NCBI RefSeq assembly: GCF_000142905.1
Contig: NW_013657633.1
Span: 107,154-171,153 of the forward strand
Length of the DNA stretch: 64,000 bases
Source of the DNA: Thecamonas trahens ATCC 50062
Lineage: Eukaryota > Protista > Apusomonadida
Reading direction: 5' to 3'
Shown: positions 4,516 to 52,924 of the stretch, one piece after another
Layout of the letters: each line of letters opens with the position of its first letter
Numbering within the stretch: the stretch's first letter is position 1
The notes under the pieces: generated by a model
Databases searched by the model: none
What the model was told of the DNA's origin: nothing
The model's input: the letters and a program-made list of their open reading frames with translations, nothing else
Program-made: the position numbers and the translations under genes

Positions 4516-7500
4516 ATGTCTGTCTCCACCCCACGCACACCATCATCTCCTGTCGGTGACGCTCTAGATGCCCGCCACCAGTGGCTGACCGCCAAGCTCT
4601 CGGCCGCCTTTGCCATGCCCGACACAGAAGCCATCCGGGCATACCTTGCCGACCCGGGCATCCTTCCCCGGATCAACGCCTTTCTCTCTGGTGGTCCGCG
4701 TGCTTTGGTCTTCTTTCAGCGTGCTGCGGGTGAGGCGGTGCCTGGCAAGCGCCCACCGTCTGTCGCAAAGCCGTCGCCGGCCTCCGCGTCGGGCGCCAAC
4801 CTCGCCGAGCGGAGTGATGCGCTTGCCCGCGCCTCATCATCGGTCTCGTTGTCGGGCAACTCGGATAGCTCGCCGTCCGGCGCGCCGGGCATCCAGCCGC
4901 ACTCTTCTAAGGTCGCCTGGGCCGTCCCGTTCTACCTCGCTGACCCGCGGACGGACATCTTCTTCCGCAAGGGCGCGTACTTTGTGCGCCTCGCGCCGTC
5001 GCTCCCGGTCTCGGAGCCGCGCATTTCCGATGAAGTCGCCTTTGGCGAGCTCATGTCTTCGGTCCTCGAGTCGTCGCACAAGCTCCTCCTCGATGTCTTT
5101 GTCCCGCACCTCCAGCATCGCGAGGACTGGGGCCAGGCTCCGCCCGACGCCGTCACCCAGTTCTTCAATCATGTCTCGTCGATGACCTCGGTCCTCAACG
5201 AGGCACTCAAGGCCGTCCAGGGTGGCATCAAGCTCCGCAAGGCCGACTCCGAGTTTGTGGTCGAGAACAAGCAGCAGGCGTTCAACAAGGCCGCCACGAA
5301 CCCGTCGCTCGTCGCCCACTACGAGGCCATCATGGACGAGTGGTGCACTCAGATCGAGCGACTCATCAACGACCGCGCTCTTGTCGACCCAGGCGCGGCC
5401 GCTCTGGCGGCAACAGCTGCCGGTAAGGTTGGCCCGGCCGAGTCGTCCGCCCCGTCAGCTGCCGCCCTCGCTGCACTCGCCGACGTCGGTCCACTCGCCC
5501 TCCTCGAGTTCTGGCGCGCCCGCGAGGCCCAGCTCCGCTCGCTCATCGAGCAGCTCAAGACCTACGAGCGCAAGGTCATTCTCGGCGTCCTTGTCACCGC
5601 CCACTCCAAGGCCCTCCGCCAGTGGCGTCTCCTTGACCCGCTCGTCACTGACGCCATCAACGAGGCCAAGGACTCGCACAAGTACCTCGAGCTCGTCCGC
5701 AAGTATGTCGAGCCACTCTACTTTGGTACCGTCTCCGCCATGACCGAGGCGCTTCCGGGCCTTTTCAACGCCATCAAGATCATCCACCAGTCGGCCAAGT
5801 TTTGCGCCGAGCCAGGTCCCATGATGGACCTCCTCACCCGCATCTCGCGCCAGCTCGCCCTCGCCTGCAAGCGCCACGTCTCCAAGGGCGGCGCCATCCT
5901 CGCTCAGGACCCCAAGCTCGTGGCTGCCAAGATCGACGACGCCATGGCTCTCATTTCCGCCTACAAGCGCGCCTTTCGTCACGTCCGCTCAAAGGCCAAC
6001 CAGGAGCTCAAGACTCGCCGCGACCGCGCCTTTGCCTACTCGGAGACCGCCGTCTTTGCCGCCCTTGTCTCGCTGGAGGCCCGTCTCTATCGCGTCTCGG
6101 ACGTCGTCCGCACCGCCTCGCAGTTTCGCGCCCTCGCCGAACATCCGGCCCTCCCCAACATGGCCCCTGTCGCATCGGCCTTTGAGTCGCTCCTTGACTC
6201 GTTCTCCTCCACAAAGTACGAACTGCTCGACGATTCGGAGCAGGCCTTTGAGCCCGACTACGCCGCTTTTCAGGACGCGGTTGCCACCCTCGAGAACGAG
6301 CTTCTTGCCCGCATCGACTCGGCGTTTGAGAAGACTTCCGAGACCGAGGACGCACTCGCCATGCTCCAGTCCCTCGAGGGGCTTGTCCACCGCGCCTCCC
6401 TCAAGACCAACCTCGACTCCAAGTACCTTGTAATCTTCCACAACTACGGCGCAGACCTTGGCGAGGCTGCCGCACTCTTCGAGTCGCTCAAGCATGCCCC
6501 GCCCACCATCCGCAACGCCCCACCCGTCGCCGGAAACATCATCTGGGCCCGCCAGCTCCTCCGCCGCATCGAGGAGCCCATGAAGAAGTTCCAGGGCATC
6601 GAGTCTATCATGGCTGCGCCCGCCGCCGTCCCGGTCATCCGCAACTACAACCGCCTCGCCAAAAAGCTCGTCAAGTTCGAGACGCTCTGGTTCTACATGT
6701 GGTCGCAGCGGGTTGTTGACGCCGGCGACGTCCTCTCCGCCCCGCTCATCGTCCGCTCGCCGACCTCGGGCCACCTCTACGTCAACATCCACCCCCGCTT
6801 CCTCCAGCTCATCGATGAGGCCAAGTGGCTCACTCGCCTTGGCCTCGAACTTCCGGCCGCCGCCCTTGCCGTCGCGGACACCGGCGCCCGCGTCAAGGAC
6901 TACTACGCAAAGCTCTCTTTCCTCGTCGATGAGTTTGCCCGCATCACTGCCTCCATCAACCCGACGCTCCGGCCGCTGCTGGCCGAGCCGCTCAGCGACT
7001 TGCTCGGCCGCATGATGCCGGGCATTACCACCTTGACATGGTCGTCTATGAACATCGACGGCTTCCTCTTTCGCGTCCACGCCGCCTTTGACAAGTTCGA
7101 GGTCCTTGTCACCCGCGCCAACACCCTCCTTGTCGCCTCGGTCCTCCGTCCGCTCGACTTTATTGCCCAGTCCTCGCTCCTCCGCCTCTCGCCACCCAGC
7201 CCGTACTCGCTCGGCGAGTTTGTCGATGCCCAGATCCGGTCCATCCGCGCCCACGCCGCCGCTTTTCGCGCCGCTGCCTCGCGCATCGAGACTGCGCTCG
7301 CCATCATCGTCGAGGAAGTCTCCGCCCATCCCACTGAGCTCTCCACCCTCAAGGTCTCGCCCGACGTCATTGCAGACTTTGTCTCGTTCTTCTCAAACAT
7401 GCTCTCCGCCGCCCTCGGCGCCACTGTCAAGCGTGCCCTCTTCGACCTCCGCTCCGCGCTCACCCCGCTCGAGCCGGCCGCGCTCATCGACCCGCCACAC

Positions 7501-10500
7501 GAGCTTGTGGCATCCCGCGCGCCCTTTCTCGCTGTCGACGTCGAGCTCTCCATCCCGCACGTCCACATCAACCCCTCGCTTGACGAGCTCCAGCGCGCTC
7601 TCAACCAGGTTGTCTCCGAGCTCATCCGCATCACAAAGTCGGTCGCCGCTCTCTCCACCCTCCCGTCGCGCCTCCGCATCGCCAACTCGCGCCCCGACGG
7701 CTCGTTCTTCACCTCGGAAGAGTTGTTTGCCTCGGTCGACATGCCGCTCACCCGCCTCGCCATGCTCGGTCTCGACGCCTCCACCACAGCGCAGACGGCA
7801 GCATCCGGAGACGCGGCCGCCGGCGCCCAGTCGAACCCCACGCTACCCACAACGTCGCACTCGGCGACGACTTCGGCGGTGGCGACCGCTGCTGCTGCTC
7901 TTTCGGCGAGCAGCGGCACTTCCGAGTACCACCCGGCCGAGCTAGCCGTCCTCTCCTCGCCGCTCTACGTCGCAGACAACAACTACCACGAGACGCTCTC
8001 CCAGAATCCGACCATTGTCCGGCTCGTGCTTCTGCTCTCCGGCAAAGCCGCCACTCTCGCGCAGGCGCTCTCGACCTACCTCTCTGCCTTTGTCAAGTAC
8101 GCCTACCTCTGGGGCAACACACTCCAGCAAGAGTACGCCGCCTTTCTCTCGGCCTCACCGCTCGTCGTCGACTTTGAGGCCGAGATCCAGCGCTTTGTCG
8201 ACGTCGAGGCCTCCATCCAGGCTATGCACTCGTCCGCGCTCCTCGGACCGCTCCTCCTCTACACCCAAGCCCTCAAGTACTCGCTTCGCTCAGAGGCTGC
8301 AAGCTGGAAAGCCCGCTACGCCGAAACGCTCCACGCCCGTGGCTCGTCCAAGCTCCGCAAGCTCGCCTCGTACATCAACTCGACCACCTCGCGCTTGCAG
8401 CGCGACATTGTCACCCTCGACGACCTCCGTAAGGTCATGTTTGTCCTCCGCGACATGCGCGCCCAAGAGGCCGTCATCGACATGGAGTTTATTCCGCTCG
8501 AGGAAATGTTTGCTCTCCTCGCCCGCCACCAGGTCCACATCAACAAGGCCGAGCTCTCCCACACCCGCCGCCTCCGCGCAAAATGGCAGAAGCTCAAGGC
8601 GCTCGCCGCCACCGAGAACGACCATCTGCTCCAACTGCAGAACCACTTTAAGCACGCCCTCCTCTCAGACGTCGAGTCGTTTGCCATCGAGGTCATCCAG
8701 TTCCGCAACAACTACAACACCCGTGGCCCCATGGCCGTCCTCGCCGCTGATGGCGCGTCGGTCGACCCCAAGGACGGCTTTGGGCGCCTTCGTGTCTTCC
8801 AGGCCATGTTTGCTAAGCTCGAGACAAAGTTCAACTACTTTCGCCGCGGCGAGCGCCTCTTTGGCCTTCCGCCGCGGCCTTTTCCCGGCCTCCTCCGCAC
8901 CCGCCGCGAGCTGGACATGCTTGACGCTCTCCACACCTTGCACTCGGCCGTCTCTGCCTCGCTTCGTCGCTTCGAGTACACTCTCTGGGCGGACACCGAC
9001 ATCTCAACCATGTCTGCCCGTCTCCACCAGCTCGCTACCCAAATGCGCGCCCTCCCACTCGCTGTTCGCGAATGGTCGCTGTACAAGTCAACCTATGCCC
9101 GCCTCGCCTCGTGGATCGCCCTCCTCCCTCTTCTCTCCGCCCTCGCCGATGCTGCCATCAAGAATCGCCACTGGATTTCCATCATGCAAGCCACGGGCAC
9201 CACCTTTTCGCTCGAGTCGCAGTCGTTCATGCTCGCGCACTTGCTCGAGGTCGACCTCCTCGCAAACGCCCAGCAAGTCCGCCGCATCGCCTACGCTGCA
9301 AAGAAAGAGCTCGACATCGAGCACTCGCTCAACAAGCTCGAGGACTTGTGGAACGAGATGACGCTCGAGTTTGTACCCTCTTACAAGGGCCGTGACGGCA
9401 TCGCCGTCCTCGACGTCGCTTCTGCAAAGGCCATCATGCACACCATGGAGAACTCGCTCATGGACATCTCCACCATGCTTGCCTCGCCCTTTGTCGCTCC
9501 CTTTTACGATACCCTCACCACCTGGCTCGCCCAGCTCTCGTCGGCCTCGGAGCTCCTCGAGTCATGGCTCTTTGTTCAGTCTATGTGGATCCACCTCTCC
9601 GCCGTCTTTACCTCGGTCACCATCCAGAAACAGATGCCCGCAGAAGCCGCTCGCTTCTCTGTCATCGACACAAAGTGGGTCCGTATCATGCGCCGTACCT
9701 CGACAGAGGCCAACGTTCTAGCCTGCTGCGTCTTTAACGACTCGCTTCGCTCATACCTCCCGCATCTGCGCGCCGAGCTTGAGCTCTGCCAGATCTCGCT
9801 CAAAGGCTTTCTCGAGCTCAAGCGCTCCGCCTTTCCGCGCTTCTACTTTGTCTCAGACTCGGCGCTACTTGAGCTCATTTCCGCTGCCTCCTCACCAACG
9901 CCGTCGCCGCACACTTTGACCAGTTCTTTGACTCGGTCGTTGGTGTCGTTCTCGACTCGGACCCTCTTCCTGGCTCTTCCGCGAACCCGTCAGGCCCTGC
10001 CGCTGCTCGCAACGCTGACCATGCATCTCACCCTGCTTCCACGCCAGTCTCCTCCGCTCTCGCTGCCCTCGACGACGCTGCCTCCATCCTCGCCCTCCGT
10101 TCGGCAGAAGGCGAGATCCTGCCGCTCCTTGCCTCGGTCACTGCCTCACCAAACCTCACCGAGTGGCTCACCGCCCTGCTAGAGCAGATGCGCCTCACCC
10201 TCCGCTCGCTCATCCGCCGTGCCGCCAAGGAGTGCTTCTCGATCGACCTCGAAGACCTGCTGCGGACGTACCCTTCGCAAGTTGCCCAGCTCGCCCTCTA
10301 CCTCATTTTTACCGAGGCCTCTGAGAACTCCATTCGCCGCATCCGCACTGAAAAGTCGGCTCTCTTCAACACCGCGCAGTACATCAAGCACGTGCTCTCT
10401 GTTGTCCAAGACCTCGTCTCCCGCGCCACCGATCGTCTCGACCGCATCAAGATGGAGGCCCTCGCCACCGTCCAGGTGCACCTCCGCGACGCCTACGACG

Positions 10501-13500
10501 ACATCCTTCGCCGCAAGGTCTACTCGCTCACAGACTTTGAGTGGACAAAGCACTTGCGAATCTATTGGCGCGCCACCGATGCCACCCCGCACGTCGAAGT
10601 TGCGCTCGGCCCGCACTCGCTCGTCCACCAGTACGAGTACATCGGCGCCGCCCCACGCCTCGTAGTCACTGCGGCCACAAAGCGGACCGCGTCTATGCTG
10701 CTCGACGCCACTGTCGCCGGCCAAGCCGTCGTCCTCGCCGGCCCGCCGAGCTCAGGCAAGTCCGAGACCCTGCGCACCCTCGCCGCACTCGCTGGAAAGT
10801 ACCATGCCCCGCTCGCCTGCTCACCCTCTTTATCGCTTCTGACATGGTCCGCATCGTCAAGGGCATGGCCCTCTCCCGCGCCTGGGTCCATCTCGACGGC
10901 ATCCACCTCCTCAAGCCGCCTGTCCTTGGCATCCTTGGCCACCATCTCTTTGCCCTCTCCCATGCCCTCCGACTCAACTTGCCGTTTGCCGTCCTGGCCT
11001 CAGGTGAAGCCCTTCCGCTCTCGCAGCTCTACTCGCGGGGCTTCAAGCCTCGCCCCATCGCCGTCGGCCCCGACGCCGCGGCTGCAGGCGTCCCGCAAGC
11101 TGCTGCAGACCAGGATGTCGCCGCAGATCAGGCCCTCGCTGTCTCCACCACATCCGACGGCATGGAGAACCCCAACCGCAGGAGTGCTTCCACCACCGCT
11201 CGCGCTCGCGCCTCGGCCCGCCGCTCCATCTCCTCCCGCCGCGCTGCACTCGCCCACGGCTCGACCCTCGCCTCCAAGACCAGCTCGCTCCTCATGGGCC
11301 CCTCAGTCGACAAGCGCATCGCCTCGCGGACCGTCGACACTCCGCTCTCGTCTCTTGCGCCCTCGCTCTCGCTCTTTGTCGGAGGCGATTCTGCGGCCGG
11401 TCGCTCGTCGTCAGCCTCGCTGCCTGGCATCGTGCTCCAGCTACCCCCACCCGAGACGCCACAGCCGAGCGCATCGGGTGTCGCCACTCCCTTGGACCGC
11501 CGTGGCGCCACCCGCCTCGACTACCGCGGTGTCCCGGTCTCCGCCGCGGCCCCGTCCGGCATCACCTTCCGTGTCCCGGATGAGGGCGTCGGTCGCTCCG
11601 GTAATCTTCTCAGCCCCGGCCACGGCCTCACTACAGGCGCCCTCCGCTCGTCACTGGCCGACCCGGCCCACGACCAAGTCGCACAACATTCATCTACCCC
11701 TGACGAGGCCGAACGCTCCCGTGATGCCCGCCACAAAGCTGGACTCTCGCCGCCGCAAATCACCGCCGTTGCGCAAGCCCTCGTCGAGGACATGCCCGAC
11801 TCGCTTCAACCACCGACGTACATGCTCAAGGAGCCACTCGGCCTCTTCGCCACTGCGCTCCTAACCTCAAGTTCGCCGCTCGCGGGCCTCCCAGCCTCGC
11901 AAGCTGTTCTCTTCAGGACCGTCACCGTTGTCACACCAGACAAGGACATGCTTGTCCGAGCCCGGCTCGTTGCCGCCGGCTTTTACTACGCCGAGCGCCT
12001 CACTCGCAAGCTCACCTCGACTCTTCGCGCCGCACAGGCAACCCTCTCGCGCGCCATCCACTACGACTGGTCGTATCGCTTCCTCGTCGCCGTCCTCGAC
12101 CGTACCTGCCTTCTTCGGCGCCAGGCTGGTCCCTCCGCCAACGAGTCGCACACGGTCATGGCCGCCCTCGCCCAGCTCACCCTGCCGCGCCTCCTACCTT
12201 CAGATATGCCGCCGTTTCTGGTCCTCCTCCGCGAGACCTTTGCCGCCACCGACATTGTCGATGATCCCAACGCGCCAGCGGCCCCTCCTGGTGCTACCGG
12301 TGAGCTCACCGCTGCTGGCATGGTCGGCGACGGCAGTGGCGCCGGATCCGGTGCGGGATCAGGTCCGCGCCAGAGTCAAATGGGCTCGTCGGGCATCGAG
12401 TCGATGCTCTCGGCCCATGCTCGCCGCCGCCGCGCCCAGGTCCGCTCGCGCCGCACCAACGACCGTGACCGCACAGCCGAGGCCGAGACCGAGGCTACTG
12501 CCGCTGCTGCTGCCGCCGCCGCCGCGCGCACCGTCCCCTTTATCGACGGCGTCGGCCGTCTGCCAGTGTCCAAGGCTCCCCAGGCCACCAAGATTCCTCT
12601 CAACGCACGGGGAGGCGGTCCCGGTGCGCCGGGCTCTACCCGACTTGCCTTTGACTCGCCTCGTGAGTCGTCGGCGTCGTCGCTTACTGTTCCTCGCACG
12701 TCAATCACCGCAAACGCAGGCGCGTCCACCGGCGCAGACGCAGGCTCGAGCTCGTCGCCGGCGGGCGTTCCCACTCTTGATATACCAGCTGCGGGCGAGC
12801 CCGATGTCGAACCGCCGACCCTTGCCACCATGACCGTCGCCCAAGCCGCAGCCGCGCTCCGATTGACGCACAACCTCGCCCACAAGACCTCAGTGCCCGA
12901 GCTCTCCGAGACCGCGCTCTTGGCTTCGCTCGAGAAAGTGGTCACCGCAACCGCCCAGTCGGCCTCGCTTGTTGCCTCCAGTGATTGGGTCGAGAAGCTC
13001 CTGCAGCTCTTTGTCTCGTTGCGAAACTGGGAGTCGACCGTTCTTCTCGGCCCGCCAGGCACCGGTAAGTCAACCGCGCTTGAAGTCCTTGTCGCAGCCC
13101 TGCATCCGTCGCTGGCGAGACTCGCTGCCGCCAGCGAGTCGCCGGCAGGCGAGGACGATGCCCGCGAGGGCTCGACCGGTGATCCTTCACTGTACCGGGT
13201 GGTGCGGATCAATCCCTACGCCCACACTACCCGCGAGCTTGTCGGCGAGGCCGACCCTCGCTCTGGCGACTGGGCCGATGGCCTTGTAGCCGCCACCGTC
13301 CGTCGCGCCATGGAAGAGTCGGAAGTCAGCCACTACATGGTGCTCGACGCACCAGTCGATCCAGTCTGGGCCGATCCGCTCGTGTCCATGCTTGATCCTT
13401 CTCGCAAGCTCGTTCTCACCTCGAACATGTACCTCGCACTCCCACCGAACATGCACATTCTCCTGGAAACGACCTCGCTCGAACATGCCTCGCCACAGCT

Positions 13501-16500
13501 TATCGGGCGAGTCGGTGTAGTCTTCTTCCCGCAAGACCTCGTCTCGCCCGACATGCTCGTCGAAGGCTGGCTCTCTTCGCGCCGGCCCGCCGAGGCCGCT
13601 CTCCTCGCGCCGTTTTTTGCCTCTCTCCTCTCCCCTGTCCTCGAATTTCTCCGCCACACCCCGACTACCGTCGTCCTCCAACCGGAGAGCGCCCGGGTCC
13701 GGACCATGCTCTCGCTCCTCGACGCCCTCCTCGAGCAAGGCGCGCTCAACAACGAAGTCTTTGAGGAAGACCACCTCGAGCGGCTCTTCATCTTTGCTCT
13801 TGCCTGGGGCATCGCCGGTGCCCTGCCCCACACCGACCGCCTCAGGCTGCAGACCTTCCTCTCCTCTGCGACCGTCAACCTGCCGCGGTTCGAGGGTTCA
13901 GAGACCATCTTTGACTTTTATGTCCAAGAGGCATCGACTCATTGGGAGCTCTGGGTCCACCGCGTCCCACACTGGGCATATCCCTCGTCCAACGTCGCCA
14001 TTCCGGATCCGGGCTCGTCGAGGACGCTCTCCTCGCTCTTCTCATCAGCCATCTCACGCGCCCGCGTTCGCGCCGCCGCTCCGGCGCCGGTCGGAGCGTC
14101 CGAGCCTCTCGTAGGCGACGGTGGCATGCTCGGTCCAGGCACGCTCCACTCGGTCTCGCCTGGTGCCGGCTCGGTGGGAGCCGGCGAACGCATCACTTCG
14201 TTCCGTCTTGGCACACAGCAGGGCATGCGCCAGTCGCTTCAGTCGCGGCTGCGGTCGGCGTTGACCGGTCCTGATGCCATGACAAGCATCGCTCCGCTCT
14301 CGTCGACGCTATTTGCGTCGACTGCATCGGCCGCAAAGGCCGTCGCTGGTGGCCCGGGCGCGTCCGGGGCGAGTGGATCTAGCTCAGGAGCCGACGGCAG
14401 TCGCGAGACCGACGACGAGCGCTCGCGTCATAGTCACGCACCACCCGCCGCATCGGCCGGCGAGCAGCTGCGGTCTGGCGGCGACGAGGCGCTCGAAGGT
14501 TTGGTCGCTGTCTCGCCAGCGCTCCCGCACGCTTGGGACGTCGACATCATGGCACTCCATGTGCCAACGCCAATCACGGTTGCCATGTCTTCGCTCATCG
14601 ACTTGCTCCGCAGCTCACAGCACGAGCTCCCGGTTCTGGTTGTCGGTAACGCCGGCTCGGGCAAGTCGTCGCTGGTCAAGCACTACCTCGGCTCGCTCGG
14701 GGATTCGGACTACCATGCCTATGCCTCACTCGCCCTTGGCCCGTTCACCACCACCGCTCAGCTGCAGGCTCAGCTTGAAGGCCGGTTGGTGCGGTCAATC
14801 GGAAATCGGTTTGCGCCGCGCGCAGCCAAGACTCTCACTGTCTTTGTCGACGACCTCGCACGGCCTCGGCCAAATGCCCACGGTGTCCGCCCACCGCTGG
14901 AGTGGCTCCGCACCCTTGTCGAGACCTCGACCTTCCTCTCCTCGTCCAAGTCGTCCGAGCTCAAGGCCGTATCAGGCTTGCAGTACCTCGCCGCCGGCCG
15001 CATGCCGGCCTCAGGCCCGCTTGCCTATCCTGCCCCCGCTGCTGACACGCTCTTCCGTTCGCGGCGGTCGCGGACGTCCATGGCCGCAGGCGGACGGCCT
15101 CCCGGGCTGGCAAGTTCGCCCATGCGTGGCGGCGGCGGTGGCGGTGGTGGTGGTGGCGGTGGCGGCGGGCACATTCGGGCCGGCTCAGATGACTCGCTCA
15201 ACGCCGGCGAGTTTGGCGACGAGCACGTGGAGCTCTCTGGTCCGGGCACCGGCGGCGCTGCGCTCACTATGGGCCGTGCCACAGGTATCGGCCTCGTCCG
15301 CACCCAGCAGGCCCTGCTTCAGGAGCAGCTCGAGGCCGTCATCCACACCAATGCCCGTCGGGTCTCGGCGCTCTCACAGCGACTCGTCGGCAAGTTTGCC
15401 GTCATCCATCTCGATGACTCGAACGAGTCGACGCTCAACGATGTTTACTCGACCCTGGTCCGTGAGGTCTTCCGCGCTGTTGGTCCCACTGACGACGGCG
15501 ACTCGCACATGAACCTCCACATTCTCAACCTGATGGAAAAAACGTGGATGATCACCTATCAACTCTGGTCCGAGGTCAAGGCCAACTTTAAGGCCACGAT
15601 CGAGACGCCGCACTACCTCTTCTCCATGCGCGATCTCTCACGGGTTTTCCAGGGCATGCTTCGTGCCGACCGCTCAGTCTTTATCGACCAGCAGACCATG
15701 CTCAACCTCTGGCGTCACGAGTGCATGCGGGTGTTTGCAGATCGGCTCGTTGCCGATGCAGACGTCGAGTGGCTGACCAAGACCCTGCGCATCCTAGTCG
15801 AGTCGGCCTTTGGCGGTGCCTCGAGCTCCGTCTTTGGCGGCAACACCGTGTTCGTAGACTCACGAGTTCTTGCCCACATCAACACCTCGGTTCGTGTCGC
15901 TGGCCTCCCCTCAGCACTCTCCAGAGCCGAGTACGTGCCAGAACCCGTGGCCCGGTCTGGCCCCAAGATCTCGAACCACACGCTCTCCGACACCGTCCAC
16001 TACACTGGTCGAGGCGGAGGCCACATCACTGACTCAATCGACGGTAGCGGCCCGGCCTCTGCTGGTGATGACCTCATGTCTGGGGCCTCGGGCGTGTTCG
16101 GTGGTGCACGGGGAAGCTTTGTCGATGGCAAGTGGGAGGGTCCTCCCGGCTCGACGGCTCCCATCTCTCCCGCTGCAAGCTACCAGCCTGTCTCATCGCT
16201 CTCTTGGCTTCAGGAGGTCATTGTCGACATGGTCCAGGTGTACAACACCCAGCACCCGCTACAGCCGTGCTCGATGGCAGTGGTTCACGGTGCTGTCCAT
16301 CACGTCTTCCGCATTGCGCGCGTGCTCACCCTTCCGCGCGGCCACTTGGTGCTTGTCAGCCCGTCGCCGCTCGGTATGCACTCGCTCGGCAAGCTTGCCG
16401 CCCACGTCTCAGGCGTAATCTCGCTCGACCTGGCTGCCGCCGCCGCGCCGGAAGCCCGATGGGGCCCGGCGCGCGCCAGTGGCGCATATGCCGCCTCGGC

Positions 16501-19500
16501 AGTGGGCGGCGACCTGCCGACCTTCTCTGAGCACTGCTCCATCCCGGTCCCGGGCGTCCCGCTCCGCACGGTCCCGCTCGCCGACGCAGCCTCGGCCAAG
16601 CATCCAGTTTCTGACCGCCACGATGGCAGCGGTCTCACTGGCGGCTCGCCACTTCCCGCCGTGGGCCTTCGCGGCAGCCACGAGTCATCGTTGACATTTG
16701 GCGCGATGTACAACCTTTCGCCCGAGTGTCTCGCCCACCTCAAGCAGGCATTCCTCTTTGCTGGCGCAGAGGGCAAGCCGACAGCGCTGCATCTGGATGC
16801 CAGCGAGGAGAGCAGCCGCCGTTCTCCGCTGCTGGACGTCCTCGACCTGTTCTTCACCTCGGGTGAGCTGGCTGGTCTGTTCTCGCCATCTGAGCTCGTC
16901 GCCATCTATCGTGACCTCAAGCCGGTGTACATCAAGACCATGTTCTGCGCGGCCGCGGCGCGGACGCTCGGTGTGGCGGCGTCGTCAGTCCCACACGCTT
17001 CGGGTGTCTACGCCCTCAACATTCTTCTTGCTCGCCTCCTCCACGGTGAGCTGACCGCAGTCCCGATCACTGTCGAGGAGGCCGAGACCATGCGGGCGGC
17101 GTTTGACAATGTTCCCGGCGAGGTGCCCCAGGCCGAGCCCGAAGCTCCTGGTCGCGAGAGCTCGTTCGGCCGTGGCTACGCCGGCGAAGAGCCAGAAGCG
17201 TCCAAGCGGCCAAGCACGGTAGCATCGACGGCAACACCTCAACAGCAGACCAAGTCGGCGGTGGTGGATCTGGATGAGTCGCGCCGTGACGCTATCCTTG
17301 CGCTCTCCAAGCTCATGGAGAGCCTCGTCGCAACGCCGTTTCTTGACCTCTGTCGGTCGTGGCCGGCTGAGCTGCTCTCGCAGACTGACAGCCCGGTCCC
17401 ATTCACCCCCGTCGGCATGACTGTTGCTGCTGGCGATGGCACTGCTGCTGGAGGTGGAGGTGGCCATGGTGGTGGAAGCCGCCGCTCGCCGACGTCGGGA
17501 AAGGCCAGTCGGGGTGCGTCCGAGTCTGGTGCGTCCGATCTGATTTCGCTCGCGCTACAGGCGTACGAAGCGCTCACCGAAGAGGAGCTCAACATGATGT
17601 ACGAGCAGGTGAGCTCGCGGATGCTGTATTCGTTCTTCATCTCGCGAGTCCAGCAACTTCTCCATGTTGTGATCAACACCACGCCCGAGAGCCTCAGCCC
17701 GCTTGTACAAGACTACAGCGGTGTGGTCAAGGTCGCACACACTCTCTATCTTCGGCCGTGGAACCGGCAGTCGATGCTGGCGGCGATTCGGGCTCGCATC
17801 AACCGTGCCGAACTCCAGTGTGGCGGGCCGATGAAGGAGCGCCTGCTGCAGACGCTTGTGGCTGTCCACGGTGTGGCGCTCAAGGTCCGGCTCCCGCTTC
17901 GGCTCCGTGGCCTCGGTGCCAATACTGCACACTGTTTCGCCTTTGTTGAGACGTTCAAGTCGATGTACGCCAACACAGTCGCCGGCCTGCAGGCTGACCA
18001 GCTGCGCATGCAGCAGGCGCGGAAGCACCTGGAAGAGGCACACGCCTCTATCGGTGTCCTCGAGTCGCTGGTTGTCGAGCAAGAGGCTGCCGTTGCGTCG
18101 GCCAACGACTCGCTCTCTTCTCTCCTCGACGCCATTACCGATGCCACCATGGCGCTGGAGCAGACCAAGGTGGCACTCGCACGAATGCGGCTGCGGATCG
18201 AGCAGGTCTCGCAGGCGTCGTCCTTGTTGTCAGACACCGTTATCGATGAGGCTCGCGTTGTCAAGCCGTACAAGGCTCCGGTCGAGGCAGCGCTCAAGTC
18301 ACTCGACGATGCCGCAATCATCTCGGAAGTTGTTGATCGCTCCAGCGAGCCGCCGTCGATTGCGCTGGCGCTCCTCCTCGACGCGGTCATGTTCGTGGCT
18401 GGGCTCAAGGTCCGACATCGGCCGGACGAGGCGCACGACGACGAGTTGGCCACCGCCATGCTTGTCCACGCTTCGGAGGCTGCCACCGGCTCAGACCTCT
18501 TTGTGCGGCTCGGAACATCACCGGCGGTGGCAGTGGCCGGGACGCTGCCAGCCGGTGGTGCCGCCGCTGTCCTCCGACTCCCTGTCTCGCCGTCCAAGTG
18601 GAATGAGATCCGCCGCCAGCTCGGCACGCCGGAGAAGTTTGAGCGTGCGCTGGAAATCCTCGACGAGGTGCTTGGGTCCAAGCTCTATGCGCTCTCGGAC
18701 GAGGTGGTTGATCTTGTGGCGCCGCTAGTTGAGCATCCGCTCCTCACCGACGCGTTGCTGGCCGAGCTTGCACCTGCGTATGTCGACCTGCGACACCTCT
18801 TCTTGGCAGTACTCGAGTATCACGCGGCGTCGGTTTTCCTCCGGCCTGTCCTCCTACAAATAGTTTACAACGACGCGCTGGTGAGCATGCTTGAGGGCCA
18901 GGTGGCCGAGCGCGAGGCAGAGCTGGAGAAGGCGCTCGCAGCTCGGGCGAAGCTGCAGGCCGAGTACGATGCCAAGTTGCTTGACAAGCAGAAGCGGGTG
19001 AACCAGCTGGGGAAGCTGACCACCCGTCTCGAGTCGGTCAACCGGCTGGTGGCGTCGCTCGACTCCGAGCGGGCGACGCTGGCCAACGCGGAAGACATGA
19101 CTCAGGCTCGCATCGAGGTCGCGCTCGGCCAGTCGGTGCAGCGCGCAGCGTTTGTGGTATACGCTGGTTCGATGCCGGCCGCGCTGCGGCTGGTCTTCAT
19201 GAAGGACGTCCGCGGAGTGTGCATTACCAACCGGCTTGCCGGCGCAACGACGGCCGTTTCTCAGGTCCGTGCCACGGTGGCGTCCGCTGGCGACAATCCG
19301 TTTGGACGGCGGGCCGGCCAGGTCTCGTCGATGCGTCTCTCGTCGATGCGGACAAGCGCCAAGTCCAAGGGCTCAGGCAGGACCGGTCACACCCGTGAAG
19401 GCTCGTCAGGCTCGGGTCGACGAACGGCCTCTCCTGTCGGAATGGCCAGCGTCGCCGGGCTAGACACCTCGTCCCCATCTGCGCTCAACGCCGAGGATGC

Positions 19501-22500
19501 TGAGGCGCTTGCCGAGCAGGCCGCGCTTCTGGACAAGGTTATCTGCGAGAACTCACCGCGGCCGGTCGTGTTTTCGCTGACAGCGCTGTGCGATGCTGCG
19601 GCGTCGAGCGACGCCGCGTCGGTTGGGCTGACCTCGTTCTCGGGGTCGGCGGTGGCGCTCTCGGCGCTCATGGCTGAGGAGCCTGGCTACCAGGACGCAC
19701 TCGCCGAGTGGGCAGCCATCGGGCTGCCGTGCGACGAGATCTCGTTGCTCAACGTGTACCTCATGCGCGGCTCGCGAGCGGCGCCGGGGCGGTACATGGA
19801 CGGCTTGACTCAGTGGCCGCTGCTGCTAGACCCAGATGGCGTCGGCCTGACGTGGATTAGGCACCTTGAGCGCGGTGCGGGCCTGGTCGTGACCTCGCCC
19901 ATGCGGTCCGACTTTGTCGAAACGCTTCGGATGTGCGTGGTCGAGGGCTTGCCGCTCGTGGTTGAGGACGTGTCCGGCGCGAGCTACGCCCTGCTTAAGC
20001 CGCTCCTCCACGGCAACGTTGTTGGCGTGGGCAAGCAGCTGCGGGTGCTGATCGGTGGCAGAGAGGTCGAGTACTCGCCGATGTTCCGGCTGTACCTGGT
20101 GAGCCAGCCGTCGGTCTTTGACGTCGACACGCCGTGTAAGCGCTCGAGCAAAGGTCCGGACGGAGCATCGCTGCCAGGTGCGTTCTTTGGCTCGGCTGCG
20201 TCGGCGCTACTGGCGGCAACCATGGTCATTGACTTTACGCTCACTGCGGCGGCAATGACCGAGGCGCTGCTCTCGCGGGTAGTCCAACGCGAGCGGCCCG
20301 ATGTCGAGGCAGAGCGGCCGATCCTTCTCAACGAGCTGGTCACGGTCTTGCGCGAGCGGGCGGCAGCGCGGCGGCAGCTCTCGCAGCTTCTTGCAGCGAC
20401 AGCGTCTGCGCGCCGCAAGCGGCGGCGGCGCAAGCGGCAGATGCGGCGCAAGCGGCGTGCCGAGCGCAAGGCTCGCGCCACAGGAGAAGACGCTAGCATT
20501 GACCGGAGCTGCTCCTCGGTCGGCTCACGGAGCGAGTCGTCGGGCGAAGACTCGTCTTGGCACTCATCAGCAAGTTCGGGTCACGCCGGCGCGGGCGAAA
20601 GCCATGCGCTGGGTGTCCAGGGTGCCCAGGCCGGTGACGATGGCGAGTCGCAACGGTCTGACGATGGGTCAATGCTACTGGTTGAGGCCTCGGGCCGCAG
20701 CATGGAGGGCATGCTCGTTTCGGGCAAGCAGATTGACGAGCTGGGCAAGGTCAAGGCGCACTTGGAGAAGCTTGACGAGAGCGTGCTCGACGTGGCGCGG
20801 CAGGTTGCTCGGATGATGGATGCACGCGAGGTGTACTTGCCTGTGGCGCTCCGAGCTGCAGCGCTCAACGGGTTCCTCCACGAGCAGGTTGCGCCACTGT
20901 ACCCGATGGCGGCCATTGCGCTGCCAATGTACGTGCGGCTGTTTGAGTTTGCGATCCGGGCCGCGGTGCGAGCGGTCCAGCCGGAGAAGCGAGTGATCCA
21001 CATTGCTGACGCGCTGACCGAGGCCGTATACGGGTTTGTCGCACATGCGCTCAACGAGCAGCAGCGGCTGCACTTTGCCTTTCTGCTAGCGGTCAACACC
21101 GATTTTGAGTGTGGCGGCGTGAGCGCAGCTGCCATCCAGATGCTGTTCGAGACCGGAGCGGGCCATCTCGGCTCGCTCAGTGACTTTGCGCACGGTGCAG
21201 TGCCGACAGCCGGGCCGTCGCACGCGTCAGGTGGAGGTGGTGGGAGCGGGAGTGGAGGTGAGTCCGGCGGAAGGCCGAGCTCGTCGCGGCGGTCGCGTCC
21301 GTCGACGCCGGCCAACAAAGGTGAGCGGCTGGGGGCCGGAATGCAGCGAGGCGGCGGCTCGACGACATCGCTTGTCTCTGGAGCCGGCGACGACGACGAC
21401 GCCGCAAGCGGCAGCGAAGGCGGCGGCGGACCTGGTGATGACGAGAGCGTAGCTTCGACTCGCCCAAGTGGATCGCGCAAAACTGCCGGCGGCGACGGTG
21501 CACTCCATGTGTTCGGCACGGTGTATCGGCACGTTACCAAGCCGCACGCGTGGATTACGGACGAGGCTTGGGCCCGGATCGAGGCGCTGTGTGCTATGTT
21601 TGCGCCTCTGGCGACCCTCAATCAGACGATTGCACTCAACGTCAACGCATGGCAAGAGTGGTTCGAGTCTGAGGATCCAGAGGCGCGGCCGTTTGTTGAC
21701 TTGCGGCGCGAGAGCGGCGAGTACGCGGTCTCGGCCTTTCTGCACGCGCTGGTCACTCTCGCACTGCGGCCCGACCGGTGGCCAGCGACGGTGAACCGAT
21801 ACGTAGAGAACGTGCTTGGTGCGGGATTCCGGGTCACGGCCTACTTTCCGCTCTCACTCGCCAAGATGATGCTGGTCTCAGACCCATCTGCGCCGGTCTT
21901 TGTCCACGAGGCGTATGCCGGTGCCGATGCGCTGCCGCTCCTCCAGCGGTGGGCCGAGGCGGTGCCGGGCATGGTTGACATGTACGTCACGTCTGTCATG
22001 CCAAGCGACATCGAATCGCCGTTCCGACTCCTCGCCATTGCGCGCAAGTGCATGTACGAGGGCTGGTGGCTGGTGCTGCAGAACGCGAGCGAGGCGCCGC
22101 AGCTGGTGGAGGCTCTTGTCGAACTGGTGAGCAAGGAGCAGCTCATGTCGTCTGGCGTGCTTGTCACTGGCTCACCACTTCTTGGCGCTGGTGCGCATGT
22201 GCACACCACGTTCCGCGAGGACATTGAGTCGAGGTGGCGCGGCTCGCTGCTGCTCTCGGGCTCGGGTCGCGGCATGCCGAGGCGCCGGAGTGACGGCGGG
22301 CAGGTCCGGCCGTCGTCGGGGGTGGAGCGGCGAAACCGCCGGAACGCCGCCAGTGAGCGCCATGGCTCGGATGCTCGGGCGAGCGCCAGTCGGGGGGACG
22401 GCGGCGAGGCCACCGGCTCGGTATCGACACAGAGTCGAACCAAGAGCTCCCGGGCAGCACAGGCGCGCCGGCTCCTGGGGCTCGGCGAGTACGCGTCGCT

Positions 22501-24883
22501 GGCGCGAACCGGGCGGCATCTGCAGCCAGGCGTGCCGTCGCGGCGGCACACGGTGTCGGCGATGTTCCGGCTTATTGTGCCGCTGCAGGACATTAGCGAG
22601 GTCGAGCCGGGTCTCCTGGCGTCGGGGGTGAAGCTGCGGTTGGAGGCGCCAGCGGGGCTCCGTGCCGAGATGCTGGCATGGCTCGAGTGGGTAGCCGAGA
22701 CCGACTTGCTCCGGGTTCGCATTGCGACCTGGCCACAGCTCGTCTTTGCGCTCGTCTTTGCCTTTGCGCTCATCCAGGGGCGGATCAAGTTTGGCAAGGT
22801 CGGCTTTGCCTCGGAGCGAGTCATGCTCTCGTGGCTCCACCTCCGGGCGGCGCTCGACCAGCTGGAGACGATTGTGTCCGAGGCTGCGAACGCGGCCGGT
22901 GTGGTAGTGTCCGAGGCTGACCCGTCGGTCGACGATGCCGAGAACGCAAGCGAGGGCCCGTCAGTCGGGAGCGGTGACGGCGCGGACGCGTCGTCGCGGC
23001 GGAGCTCGCGCGACAGTGGCAGCAAGACCAGCAAGCGCACACGAGGGCTGGAGAAGGTCATCAAGCTTCCGTGGTCACTCATCCGGTTTGTGGTGGCCGA
23101 GACCATCGGCTCGGCCCTGACGTCAGACGCGGACCGCCGGGTGGTCAGCGTTGTCGTCGACAACATCTTTACCAAGCACATGTTCGACAAAGCATTCTCG
23201 TTTGACGTCTATGAGACGGCGCGGCTGGTGGGTGACGACCGGCGGCCGATGTACAAGCTGCCTGTCCTGCCGCCGAGCGGTAGTGGAACAGGCTCGTCGG
23301 GGCGGTTGGTCATGGATGCCCTCTACGCCGAGGTGCTGTCGTGGCCCGAGCACGAGCCGCCGTCGCTGTACGGGCTCTCGCCAGCTGTTGTCTCGGCAAA
23401 AATCAACGAGCGGACGCGGCAGATGCTGCTGGAGATGCAGCAGCTGTACGCGTTCAACCCGCGACTGGGTGAGGCGTTTTGCGAGTCGCTCGGCGCGCGG
23501 GCACCGGGCGTGACAGTGCCGGCCCGTCCGCGAGAGCGGGCATGGGGCGCGGCGGTCTCGCCGTCGATGTCTGTCGCGCTGGCGACAAAGGCCGCAGGTA
23601 TGGCGGCGTGGTGGGCACGGAACCCGCTGCCACTGAGGGCTCTGCTCCCGTACTCATCCAAAGAGCTGCTCAAGGTGCTGAAAACGATGCAGGAAAGCAT
23701 TCCGCTCGCGCTGGTCCACGGGCAGCTCCGCGACCGACTGCGGAGCATGCCGAGCTCATCGCCGTTCCGCGAGGTGCTCGCCTTTGAGGTGAGCGAGCTG
23801 GAGCGTGTGGTTTTCAAGGTGCAGGAGGCGATGGTACTTGTGCGGTATGGGCTCTCGTGCGGAGTGCTCGGCCTGTACCAGGCGCACCGGTGGATGCAGC
23901 ATCCAGACGTGGGGTGCACGGCGTGGGAGGTTGCGCGGCGGCACGATACGCTGGGCGCGTTTGCGAGCCCGTCGCGCGGCTCGCGCAGTGGTGATGGGAG
24001 CGGCCGGCGCGGTGGCGGGGTGCGGCCGCTGGCGGTGATGGTCAGCTCTGTCGCGCGAATTCCGCAGGCAACTGGACTGGAGGATGACATCGACGTGGAG
24101 CGCAGTGCGGCACTGGCGGCCGAGTGGTCGGGCGTGGTGGCGCACTTTTTCGAGCTCGTCCACGCCATGAACTTTGGCCTGGTCCCGCCGTCGTGGCAAG
24201 ACTGGTCGTGGGGTGCCAAGGATCTCGGGGCGTGGCTGGCCGGCCTCGCGGCGCGCGGCGACCAGCTCTCGGCTTGGCTCAAACGGGAGCGGACGCCGAT
24301 GGTGTGGCTTGGTGGCCTTTTTGGTCCAGCCGAGTTCCTCCATGCCCTCAAGCGCAAGGTGGTGGGCGACCACCCCGGGTGGCAGCTCGAGAACGTGGTA
24401 CTGTACGCCGAGGTGACGAACCGCGAGCGCGAACAGTACAACACGTCGCCAACCGATGGTGCGTATGTCTACGGGCTGCTGCTCGAGGGTGCGTCGTGGG
24501 CCGGCGGCAAGCTTGTCGAGGCGCCGCCGAACTCGCTCCGTAAGACCATGCCGGTCACCGTCATCACTGTCCTCCAGCGCAAGGACCGGCCGCGTCATCG
24601 CGCAAACGCCTACGCCGCGCCGCTCTTCCTCTCGCCGCAGCGGAGCACGCGGCTTATGATGGTCGACCTGCCGACCGATGTCGATGCCAAGCGGTGTGTT
24701 GCGCGGGAATCGCCTTGCTTGCGCGTGAGTGACCGTGTGGGCAGGCACGCCAGTGAGCACCGCTGGGTAAATATCTGTGACGCTGGGTGTTGGAGGGGTG
24801 TGGGACAGATTACAGGTTTAACGCAGCAGTGCGGGTTTCTCACTTGCGCTCGCCGAGGCCTAGCGCGACGGCGCGCGGGTTGA
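4516..24883 (+). CDS. Giant divergent axonemal dynein heavy chain (DNAH5/8 outer-arm gamma-like), split over 3 frames by single-base deficits at ~9895 and ~10830
   Basis: Tail motif [29 protein letters not shown]. Linker motifs RHW and LELKRSAFPRFYFVSD. AAA1 YEYIGAAPRLVVT and GPPSSGKSET. AAA2 GPPGTGKST and MVLDAPVDPVW. AAA3 GNAGSGKS and VFVDDL. PHYLFSMRDLSRVFQGML. Stalk coiled coil. AAA5 WPLLLDPDG. C-terminal WLGGLFGP and GAYVYGLLLEGASW. The exact 3' end is uncertain. Confidence 0.9.
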
Positions 24884-27800
24884 GAGTCACGCTCTTGGTC
24901 ACGTTGTTGGTCTTGTAGACGCCAACGAGGCGGTCGGCGAGTTCAAACATGTTGTTGCGGAGCGAGATGACGATAAACTGGGCGTCCTTGGTCCGGTCCT
25001 TGATGTAGTTGGCGACAATGGAGACGTTGCGGAAGTCGAGGGCGGCGTCGATCTCGTCCATGACGTACAGTGGCGTCGGCTTGTAGTGGTGGAGGGCAAA
25101 GACAAGGGCGAGCGAGGAGAGAGTCTTCTCTCCGCCAGAGAGGTTGGAGATGTTCTTCCAGCTCTTCTTGGGCGGACGGACCGAGAAGACGATGCCCTCG
25201 GAGAACGGGTCCAACGAGTCGACTAGCTCGAGCTCGGCGTCGCCGCCCATGGTAATCATCTGGTACATCTCCTTGAGCTTGAGGGTGATAGTGGAGAAGC
25301 CAGCCATGAACTTGTCGAGCCGCTGCTTGCGAAGCGAGTCGAAGACGTCGCGGGCGGCGTCGCGCTTCTCGGTGATCTCGTCGAGCGCGGTCACCTTGGT
25401 CAAGTACTCCTCTTCTTTCTCACGGTACATCTGGATGGCGCGGAGGTTGGGTGACATCTCCTTGATGGCTTCCTCAAGGAGTCCAATTTCGGCCTCGAGC
25501 TCGGCCTTGTCAACCTTGGCCAGCTTCTTGGCTGAGAGCTCGCGGAGGACGCCAGAGGCAGGTGCGGCGCCAGAGGCGTCGTCGCCACTCTCATCGCCGG
25601 CGTCGTCATTGTTCGCTTCCGCCTCGTTGTCGCTCTCATCGTCGTCCGACGCAAGGTCCATGCCGGCGCCGGTCTTGTTCTGGAGCTCGGCGAGTTGAGT
25701 CGGCGAGGAGATGAGGCCGAGCGATGAGGCGTACTGGGCCTGGACTGCCTCCATCTTTGTGGACCAGTCGGCGATGCGGCGGTCGTAGTCTGCGATGGTA
25801 CGGGCGAGTTCGTCGCGGCGGTCGGTGATGTCGACTTCCTGAGCCTGCAATGCGTTGTACGTCTTTTTCTGGTCGTCGTAGACGTTCTTGAGGCCTGCCA
25901 GCTCCTCCTCCTTCTCCTCCATCAACAGCTGGGTCTGCTTGTACGACTCGAGGACGGCGACGGCCTCGGTCTCGAGCGTGGCAAACTCAGCCTCCATGGT
26001 GGCGAGCGAGGCGGCGAGGTCAGCCGACTCGGTCTCGAGGCCGGCGAGGGCGGCCTCAGCCTTGGCCAGTGCCTTGGTTGCCGACTTGATGGCGACCTTG
26101 GCCTTGGTCGCTGCCGACGCGGCGAGGTCTGCCTGCTGCTGGGCCGAGTCACGGGCCGACTGCGCCTTACGCAGCTCCATGCCACCAGCCTCGAGAATTT
26201 TCTCCTGCAGGATCTTGATCTCGGCATCGAAAGCGTCAAGGACGAGCTTGGTCTCGTCGAGAGCGGCCTGCTCGGTCGCCATGGTCGCCTCCAGCGCTGC
26301 GAGTTGGGTCTTCTCTTCGGGTGTGAGCGCTGCGGCGGCGGTGTGGGCTTCGATTTGAGCCTTGAGGACCGGCTCGGCAGCAGTCGACGCGGCGAGATCC
26401 ATCTCGAGCTTGGAGATGGAGGTCTCGAGGGTGGAGACCTTGGTGGCGACCTTGTACGAGCGACGCTTGAGCGACTCCATCTCGGCGCGGAGGGCGGCGA
26501 GCTGTGAGGACTTGGTCTTGAGCTCGGCCTCGGCAGCGGCAACGTCGGCGGCGGAGACGACCGAAGCAGCAGCAGCAGCAGCGGCAGCGGCTGACGCCGA
26601 CGACGCCGTCGCCGAGGTGAGCATGGCGCCCGAAGACGCACGCGAGCCACCGCCGGACATGGTACCCGAGGTGTCAATGAGCTGGCCGTCGAGGGTGACA
26701 ACCCGGAAGCGACGATCGCCGGCAAAGGCGACAGATGTGGCGGCGTCGAGCGAGTCAGCAACCAGGGTGTTCTTGGTGGCGTAGAAGAAAGCCGGCGCCA
26801 CCTCGGGACTCGACGGCGTGATGAGGTCAAAGAGGCGCGGTGCCGGAAACGACGCCGCCGCTGACGCCATGTACTTGGCCAGGTAGCCGAGCTCGGAGAG
26901 GATGATAAAGGTGGCGCGGCCGAGGTTGTGCTTGCGGAGGTAGGCGACGGCCTTGGCTCCGGTTTCGGGCGTGTCAACAACAATGTTGTTGAGCGCCGGC
27001 GCGGCGGTCGAGACGGCGACGTCGTAGGCCTCGTCAATGACGCCGAGGTCCCCAAGCCGGCCGAGCACGCCCGGAAGCTTGCCGGCGGCCTTGAGCGCAA
27101 GGAGCTCGTCGAGCACGGCCGAGCGTGAGTTGGCGGCCTGAAGCGAAGACCGCGACTCCTCGAGCGTCGAGCGGAGGGCGGCGACGTCCTTCGCCAGCTC
27201 GGCCTCCATGGCTCCGGCCTGGGCGAGGTCGTTGGCAATCTGCGTCGCCTCAGCAGACGCCTCGGCAAGCTTGGCCTGGAGCGCAGCAAGCTTTTCGGCC
27301 TTGGCGTCGGCGGTCGAGGCGTAGCTCTCGAGCTCAGCAGTGGCCTTGGCGAGGGCGGCGGCAGCCTTGGCAACACGGTCGTTGATGAGCGCAGCCTGCG
27401 AGGCTGCGAGGTCGAGAGCAGCCTTGTGCTGGGCCGAGGCCTCGACATGCGGCATGGCCGCCTTCTGCGCTTCTTCGATCTCGGCCTGGAACTCGGCCGT
27501 GACCGAGGCGAGCTGAGCGTTGAGCTCCTCGAGCGCCTCGCTGTGCTTGGCGGCGGCCGCGGTGTGAGTCTCGAGGGCGGCCGCAGCATCGGCGGCATCG
27601 GTCTCGGCACGGGCCAGGTTTGCCTTGCACTGCTCGACCTTGGCAGCAGCAGTGACGCCGGCCTTGGCGTTCTTCTTGATCTTGGTCTTGCAGTGCTTGA
27701 CGTCCTCGCGGAACTTGACGTCCTTGCGCTCGTAGGCCTCAAACTCGCGCTTGGCCGCGTCAAGCGCAGACTCGACGTCCTTGTGCTCGGTCTGGATGCG

Positions 27801-28706: not shown

Positions 28707-28740
28707 CCCGGACGTACTTGCCACTGCATAGATATGGAGA

Positions 28741-28743
<3 letters not shown>

Positions 28744-28772
<29 letters not shown>
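28744..28772 (+). repeat. (GT)n microsatellite just upstream of SMC4
   Basis: read directly. Confidence 0.95.
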
Positions 28773-28775
<3 letters not shown>

Positions 28776-29299
28776 TATGCGTTGGGGGATGGTTGGGGGA
28801 AGGGGGGGGAGGGGGAGGGTATGGAAGGTCTTTGACGATTTGCGCGCCAAAACTTTGGCCACCTGCCTGGTGGTGGTGGGAGGGGAAAGGGGATGAAATA
28901 TGGATGGGAGGTGGGGGTGGGGATGGTAGGGGATGGGGATGGGGGTGGGGGATGGAGTGGATGGGGGGTGAAGGAGGCGTACTCTGTTGTTGGGTACAGA
29001 AGGTGGGACGAGTGTGCGTGCGTGTGGGTGGTGGGTGGTGGGTGGTGGGCGGTGGGTGGTGGGTGGTGGTGGGTGGTGGGTGGTGGACGGATTGGGAGGG
29101 GAGGTGATGTATTTGTAGTTTACGAGGCCCAGACGGAGAAAGGGGTTAGGCTTGGGTTGGTTTGGGGGTCTCGGGTGAGGGCGCAGGGTGTAGGTTAGTG
29201 GATGCAGGAGCTGGTGGCCACAGGCACGGCCACAGATGCAGGCAAAGGCAGCGGCGCGCGCGATGGATAGGGGGGGTGGGGGAACGAGGCGGCGACCAG

Positions 29300-42901: not shown

Positions 42902-42928
42902 CACACACACACACACACACACACACAC
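42902..42928 (+). repeat. (CA)n microsatellite abutting the TRAPPC10 start
   Basis: read directly. Confidence 0.95.
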
Positions 42929-42932
42929 GCGC

Positions 42933-52779: not shown

Positions 52780-52924
52780 GATCCGTCGAGGTGGGTGTGG
52801 GATGCCGATGGATGCAGGCCGGAGAGGGAAAGTTGGATGGATTGGCTTTGGATCGACTTGGCAGGCGACACACCGGGATCGGGGGAGTGGAGGGGATCAG
52901 GGGAAGTCGAGGGGAGGGGAGGGG

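Follow-up and report, generated by a model that had tools for sequence, protein, structure and literature searches.

Several classes of dynein heavy chain are already known to depart from the motor plan of the outer arm. Classes 12 and 13 have tails like those of the outer-arm classes 3 and 4, and the formation of an outer-arm-like heterodimer has been suggested for them (Kollmar 2016, PMC5100056). In the same study, orphan dyneins of the flagellate Thecamonas trahens were placed basal to classes 12/13, with high support for class 12, and were treated as bona fide genes, while the sites of ATP hydrolysis and microtubule binding were left unanalysed (PMC5100056). DNAHX, which probably corresponds to Kollmar's class-12 dyneins, has been described as a non-motile derivative of an outer-arm class, with insertions and a degenerate AAA1 (Chai et al. 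2025, 10.1101/2025.01.18.633724). It has 5,272 residues and a Thr-to-Val change in Walker A; in sea urchin it is locked in the pre-power-stroke state, retains ATP at AAA1 and pairs with another heavy chain, and it may serve transport or the inhibition of other dyneins (10.1101/2025.01.18.633724). It is considered absent from protists, its animal origin being tied to external fertilisation, and it is reported to have no sequence homology to DNHD1 (10.1101/2025.01.18.633724), which forms the metazoan-specific class 11 (PMC5100056). Here, a dynein heavy chain gene with a degenerate motor is described from T. trahens ATCC 50062, on a stretch of 64,000 nucleotides (the window; RefSeq assembly GCF_000142905.1, contig NW_013657633.1, positions 107,154 to 171,153), and is compared with these systems; its coordinates are those of the window.

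The gene is best explained as a non-motile heavy chain, or pseudo-motor, derived from the outer-arm gamma/DNAH5 class and kept beside a canonical paralogue, with a head that would be static or regulatory; judged from the sequence, a probability of about 0.6 is assigned to this reading. The gene lies on the forward strand, from an ATG at 4516 to a TGA at 24730-24732 (~6,790 codons), and three-frame translation reads it in four pieces separated by three -1 (1-nt) frame changes. Searches, alignments and trees were all run on the separate pieces, not on one joined protein.

Hydrolysis of ATP at AAA1 is needed for the dynein power stroke. The motifs of the nucleotide sites were aligned across 11 dyneins, namely six canonical chains of the gamma class and five divergent chains. 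The AAA1 Walker A is kept (GPPSSGKSET, 10740-10769, frame 0). Walker B, at 10883-10909 in frame 2, reads WVHLDGIHL where the canonical rows have WGCFDEFNRI: the Asp is retained and the catalytic Glu is replaced by Gly, encoded by GGC at 10898-10900. The sensor-1 motif FITMNPGY has become FATALLTS (11846-11869), with Leu in place of Asn, and downstream of it PLAGLPASQA stands where canonical chains have GRQELPENLK. The HYDFGLR motif reads HYDWSYR and keeps its Arg, which we take to be the sensor-2 Arg. In AAA2 the Walker A is intact (GPPGTGKS, 13049-13072) and the NGDR motif, which presumably holds the Arg finger acting on AAA1, is replaced by SNMY (13418-13441). Both the Walker A (GNAGSGKS, 14645) and the Walker B (FVDDL, 14840) of AAA3 (14645-14860) are intact. 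The AAA4 P-loop is lost, SPSPLGMHS (16358-16384) standing for GVGGSGKQS, and the six DNAHX-like rows considered below all lack it too. At the three places that mark a canonical gamma motor, the DE of Walker B, the Asn of sensor-1 and the AAA4 P-loop, the gene reads LDGIHL, FATAL and SPSPLGMHS, respectively. The original prediction, made from the letters of the DNA, had quoted the Walker A, Walker B and sensor-1 motifs of AAA1 and the P-loop of AAA4 at or within a few bases of where they lie, and they fall at homologous positions in the canonical alignment. The alignment bears out the absence of the catalytic Glu and of the sensor-1 Asn from AAA1, and the P-loops of AAA2 and AAA3, the tail and the C-terminal domain do persist, the stalk and microtubule-binding domain (MTBD) as a remnant.

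The original prediction placed the defect in AAA1 and AAA4 only, and this was too narrow: the sequence comparisons show that degeneration extends over the whole motor, the microtubule-binding region included. Pfam scores of the gene and of the canonical gamma paralogue of the same genome were 432 and 600 bits for DHC_N1 and 285 + 28 and 421 bits for DHC_N2; in the motor they were 131 and 461 for AAA_6, 101 and 227 for AAA_7, 49 and 280 for AAA_8, 95 and 266 for AAA_9, and 127 and 260 for Dynein_C. Neither the Pfam MT domain of the stalk (145 bits in the paralogue) nor Dynein_heavy (105 bits) was matched in the gene. Among the columns invariant in six canonical gamma chains of distant eukaryotes, 34-72% per motor domain are kept by the gene, the same range as in DNAHX-like rows, against 72-98% in leave-one-out controls. 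Identity of the motor to canonical chains is ~26%, and insertions rich in A, G and S and of low complexity add ~1,585 residues at 23 sites in the third reading-frame piece. The MTBD (18341-18847) is diverged but recognisable, with residues conserved in the canonical rows replaced and an insertion of ~60 residues after its first helices, in the same loop as in the aligned caecilian and sponge rows. The tail, with its dimerisation, intermediate/light-chain and docking regions, is well conserved.

These sites also bear on whether the head might still be an active motor with unconventional chemistry, working for example by AAA3 hydrolysis or with substitute residues at AAA1. Such activity would find some room in the kept AAA1 P-loop, Walker B Asp and Arg at the presumed sensor-2 position, together with the intact Walker A and B of AAA3. 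It is nevertheless highly improbable, given that the AAA1 site has lost its catalytic Glu, its sensor-1 Asn and its probable Arg finger, that the MTBD and stalk have diverged past Pfam recognition, that constraint is relaxed over the whole motor, and that the power stroke depends on hydrolysis at AAA1.

The ancestry of the gene is clearest in its tail, whose best matches in the PDB are the Chlamydomonas outer-arm gamma chain (846 bits) and human DNAH5 (774), compared with 339 for DNAH10 and 296 for the beta chain. Three trees support a clade of the gamma class at 100%. By sequence, the gene is thus assigned to the outer-arm gamma/DNAH5 class, broadly defined (Kollmar's class 3), in keeping with the gamma (DNAH5/8) derivation first proposed. 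The genome holds ~16 dynein heavy chain loci. The canonical gamma/DNAH5 paralogue is present among them on contig 23 (~383.6-397.7 kb), with an open frame of 4,714 codons, a tail that matches DNAH5 with 1,361 bits, and intact GPAGTGKT and FDEFNR motifs. The gene is not a recent in-genome duplicate of this paralogue, because a position as its sister is rejected (delta lnL, the difference in log-likelihood, 53; approximately unbiased (AU) test, p = 5.6e-6).

Four further loci in the genome have a degenerate AAA1. A second degenerate heavy chain, at ~44.5-58 kb of contig 23, has an unbroken open frame of 4,544 codons and a tail of the outer-arm beta type, which scores 379 bits against the Chlamydomonas beta chain; in its AAA1 the Walker A reads GPHDTGKT, the Walker B reads IDSLEV and sensor-1 is lost. 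From its tail and by analogy, this beta-tailed chain is a natural candidate for the partner of the gene. Dyneins with degenerate AAA1, recognised by weak AAA1 matches, also lie at ~68-72 kb of contig 24, ~11.5-16 kb of contig 35 and ~94.6-98.7 kb of contig 14. The one on contig 24 carries GPASSGKSETLRELA, very like GPPSSGKSETLRTLA of the gene, and has no Walker B; the one on contig 14 keeps the DE and has lost the FNR.

Whether the gene is alive depends largely on how its frame changes are read. Piece 1 (4516-9897, frame 1, 1,794 codons) comprises the N-terminal tail and most of the linker, with Pfam matches to DHC_N1 (5314-7065), the DYH2-5-8 coiled coil (8314-8664) and DHC_N2 (8896-9897). 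Piece 2 (9900-10811, frame 0, 304 codons) contains the end of the linker and the start of AAA1 including Walker A, and matches positions 351-403 of DHC_N2 and 2-59 of AAA_6. Piece 3 (10808-24706, frame 2, ~4,630 codons) runs from the AAA1 Walker B through the C-terminal domain, its open frame itself extending to 24883, and piece 4 (24706-24732, frame 1) encodes GIALLARE followed by the TGA stop. The first frame change (9885-9900) lies beside CC/AA dinucleotides and leads from LLELISAASSP in frame 1 to NAVAAHFDQFF in frame 0, with homology to the canonical LLEIL...VQPHL unbroken across it. The second (10803-10815), at a CCCC run, leads from LAALAGKYHAP in frame 0 to LLTLFIASDMV in frame 2; the Walker A and Walker B of AAA1 stand on opposite sides of it, 39 residues apart as compared with 41 in canonical chains. 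At the third (24704-24732), with a GGG at 24705-24707, KRCVAR gives way to GIALLARE and the stop, so that frame 1 spells a canonical dynein C-terminus; the canonical paralogue ends in RGVALLTTRN and a stop. BLAST shows the gene to be collinear with that paralogue, with the tail, the stalk/MTBD remnant and the C-terminal domain all present. Introns were considered as the source of the three frame changes and ruled out, as homology is continuous and spacing stays within two residues of canonical.

A frame free of stops for thousands of codons had been predicted; this holds for the motor piece and fails for the gene as a whole, which is spread over four pieces. The frame of piece 3 has no stop in 4,691 codons, a length that greatly exceeds what chance would leave open; the other five frames of this stretch contain 55-152. 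Since 2.9% of single-base substitutions in the motor frame would create a stop and none is present, neutral drift beyond ~0.7% per site is unlikely. Set beside a motor identity of ~26%, this limit implies that nearly all of the motor divergence accumulated under selection for an open frame, which supports the earlier proposal that the divergent motor was kept by selection.

The absence of stops is also compatible with a very recent death of the gene, as three indels correspond to ~25-30 substitutions, among which fewer than one stop is expected. The gene would then be a long-maintained divergent dynein that has suffered three genuine deletions of 1 nt and has begun to decay. Its three breaks are a modest excess over the other dynein loci of the assembly, which show about one break per 23-40 kb (three in ~118 kb of loci, or about one per 23-25 kb if shorter open frames are counted); two other degenerate dyneins are unbroken, with open frames of 4,544 and 4,841 codons, and third-position GC is 0.76 in the motor as compared with 0.86 in the canonical paralogue. 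Recent inactivation is nonetheless unlikely. All three breaks are -1 and lie at or beside short single-base runs, and the canonical C-terminus and stop appear exactly where expected after the third. An intron-less break of frame at a TTT run (WWTWEVEDV to FRQVRKG) occurs in the canonical dynein on contig 57, and the canonical dyneins of contigs 17 and 14 have frame changes, too tight for an intron, that are likely of the same kind; a similar break may also exist in the TRAPPC10 homologue of the window. Moreover, the orphan dyneins were taken as bona fide genes by Kollmar (PMC5100056). Like breaks are found in at least one canonical dynein gene of the same assembly, and probably in three, which makes single-base length errors of assembly the more likely source of the three frame changes, by about three to one over recent inactivation. 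The assembly (28.7 Mb in 131 contigs, from an intron-poor eukaryote) thus appears to carry single-base length errors, which bears on every frameshift-based call made in this genome.

Five points weigh against a retained non-motile chain. Three frame breaks fall within 20 kb, an excess over the other dynein loci of the assembly (Poisson p ~0.01-0.06). The gene is known from genomic sequence alone. Low-complexity insertions also enlarge at least one canonical dynein of the same genome, so that added length is by itself no diagnostic sign. Both the partner and the mode of action proposed for the protein come from tail class and analogy only. Finally, tail/linker residues 1100-1794 were searched exhaustively with HMMER against 1.84 billion representatives; thousands of dyneins were matched, and none was a close orthologue, the best relative in this region being 37% identical. 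A word search with the 304-residue middle piece was aimed at fragments from independent assemblies that extend across the breaks of frame. Among proteins of 167-532 residues it gave no match at E <= 1e-10, longer proteins being outside its scope.

Several of the top HMMER matches are gamma-class chains that themselves have a degenerate AAA1. One clade of such chains has members from Rhinatrema (a caecilian), Erpetoichthys (a bichir), Hymenochirus (a frog), the sponge Sycon ciliatum and the choanoflagellate Salpingoeca infusionum, together with two metagenomic proteins. This degenerate clade is taken, from its sequences, to be DNAHX and its relatives, because its vertebrate rows carry the Walker A Thr-to-Val change, the lengths of its vertebrate, sponge and choanoflagellate members (4,856-5,517 residues) are near the reported 5,272, and its taxa fit. 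In this clade the animal DNAHX-like sequences are joined by the S. infusionum protein and by the two metagenomic ones; the choanoflagellate grouping contradicts the reported absence of DNAHX from protists (10.1101/2025.01.18.633724) and agrees with a start of class 12 in Holozoa (PMC5100056).

Trees of the tail were computed from 29 rows under LG+G4 and from 20 rows and 1,563 columns under LG+C20 with posterior mean site frequencies (PMSF), the smaller set omitting rows P0023, P0032, P0043, P0049, P0063, P0069, P0075, P0124 and P0126. They resolve the gamma class into a trichotomy of the gene, the DNAHX-like clade and a canonical clade. The last excludes the gene with 97-98% support in the Shimodaira-Hasegawa-like approximate likelihood ratio test (SH-aLRT) and holds sequences from excavates to animals, including the canonical gene of the same genome; long-branch effects could contribute to this exclusion. 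The motor tree joins the gene to the DNAHX-like clade as its sister (95% SH-aLRT), and in that same tree the long-branch control failed. A degenerate group that includes one diplonemid sequence, and whose tail lies firmly inside the canonical clade, is drawn by the motor tree toward the degenerate clade, and long-branch attraction is therefore at work there.

The affinity to DNAHX may accordingly reflect descent or convergence. Independent, lineage-specific degeneration of a gamma duplicate, a question of origin only and compatible with a non-motile head, falls just short of even odds. It would accord with the trichotomy of the tail trees, with the long-branch attraction seen in the diplonemid-containing group, and with the repeated independent degeneration of AAA1 within the gamma class, for example in that same group and in a ciliate-related sequence. 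It would also accord with the PS2i site between H6 and H7 of AAA4S (canonical position 3178), at which DNAHX has a conserved insertion of a beta-hairpin and a helix and where alignment shows no insertion in the gene, its nearest insertions being at 3077 and 3085; at this site the caecilian and sponge rows carry insertions of 51 and 120 residues, respectively, and the choanoflagellate row carries none. Common descent is favoured by the motor tree and by the traits that the gene has in common with DNAHX-like rows, namely an AAA4 that has lost its P-loop, insertions that fall in the same loops of AAA2 and of the MTBD, and the replacement of DEFNRI by D-x-x-H-L-L, as in the sponge and caecilian rows. 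Furthermore, constraining the tail of the gene to group with the DNAHX-like clade costs a delta lnL of only 1.7 (AU p = 0.35), so that this grouping is not rejected, and Kollmar's Thecamonas orphans were basal to class 12 with high support (PMC5100056).

Tentatively, and with somewhat more doubt than attaches to an independent origin, the gene and the beta-tailed chain of contig 23 may be proposed to correspond, in a protist, to the 'dynein-X' pair of animals (DNAHX/class 12 with class 13). If so, a non-motile outer-arm-like heterodimer would predate animals and be no younger than the ancestor shared by apusomonads and opisthokonts, in contradiction to an animal origin of DNAHX linked to external fertilisation (10.1101/2025.01.18.633724). 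The present data suggest, without proving it, that the DNAHX-type lineage may be older than the animals.

A retained non-motile chain could act as follows. The head would still bind ATP at AAA1 and, without hydrolysis, would go through no power-stroke cycle. Through its tail, the class of which points to the outer arm, the protein would assemble into an outer-arm-like complex, the beta-tailed degenerate chain being its likely partner. The head itself would be static or regulatory, by analogy with the 'dynein-X' complex of sea urchin sperm, to which DNAHX belongs; the role of 'scaffold, tether or brake' suggested by the original prediction remains a conjecture.

The gene is a new protist example of the non-motile dyneins already described (DNAHX, class 12, DNHD1) and not a new kind of protein. 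Divergent orphan dyneins of the Thecamonas lineage have also been published (PMC5100056); what is added here is a description of each site, the relaxed constraint over the whole motor, a candidate partner with a beta-type tail and the connection to DNAHX. Non-motile heavy chains such as DNAHX and DNHD1 have only recently been seen as functional parts of flagella, and their origin is debated. A flagellate with gamma-tailed and beta-tailed pseudo-motors beside canonical outer-arm genes offers a simple system in which to address what a dead head does, be it transport, the inhibition of other dyneins or the specialisation of one flagellum, and whether the dynein-X complex of animals is older than animals.

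Some observations concern the surroundings of the gene. It converges with a gene of the SMC family (SMC_N, hinge; 24840-29342, reverse strand), and the apparent overlap of 44 bases between the two disappears when the frame change at the dynein C-terminus is allowed for. The TRAPPC10 homologue (42168-46825, forward strand) extends over two overlapping open frames with a switch near an AAAA run at ~43830, which is ambiguous between a single-base error and a short GT-AG intron. The window has ~65% GC; G+C falls locally to 0.52 at 52001-54000 and is 0.60-0.68 elsewhere. Along the dynein gene (4516-24880) the third codon position drifts from C-ending in 5' to G-ending in 3', the skew passing from -0.41 to +0.20, and the canonical dynein of contig 23 shows a like drift, from -0.07 to +0.34. 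In both long genes the pattern resembles a mutational or codon bias that depends on position along the transcript.

Compared with known systems, the gene has the DHC_N1, DYH2-5-8 coiled coil and DHC_N2 tail and the domain order of canonical gamma/DNAH5/DNAH8 chains, and it differs from them in the loss of its AAA1 and AAA4 catalytic motifs and in its position outside the pan-eukaryotic canonical clade. With DNHD1, which is needed for mammalian flagellar assembly, it has in common a heavy chain lacking catalytic Walker B residues and bearing disordered insertions. No evidence linking the gene to DNHD1 was found, none of the sequences compared being identified as DNHD1. DNHD1 had been named as an analogue or homologue, and the closest described kind proves to be DNAHX/class 12 (10.1101/2025.01.18.633724; PMC5100056). 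The gene differs from DNAHX in having no PS2i insertion in AAA4S, in forming, on its tail, a trichotomy with the DNAHX-like and canonical clades, in keeping a recognisable stalk/MTBD remnant, in carrying Ser at the Walker A position where Thr has become Val in DNAHX, and in its protist host. It is very likely one of Kollmar's Thecamonas orphan dyneins, equated with them by description and not by sequence match, and a pair that fits his account of the tails of classes 12 and 13, one gamma-type and one beta-type, each attached here to a degenerate motor, is present in this genome. Closest of all is the likeness to DNAHX: both derive from the outer-arm alpha/gamma (DNAH5/8) class and are lengthened by many insertions, one of them in the MTBD; in both, the catalytic motifs of AAA1 are poorly conserved; the gene, like the rows taken as DNAHX orthologues, has lost the P-loop of AAA4; and a second heavy chain stands as partner, in Thecamonas as a candidate.

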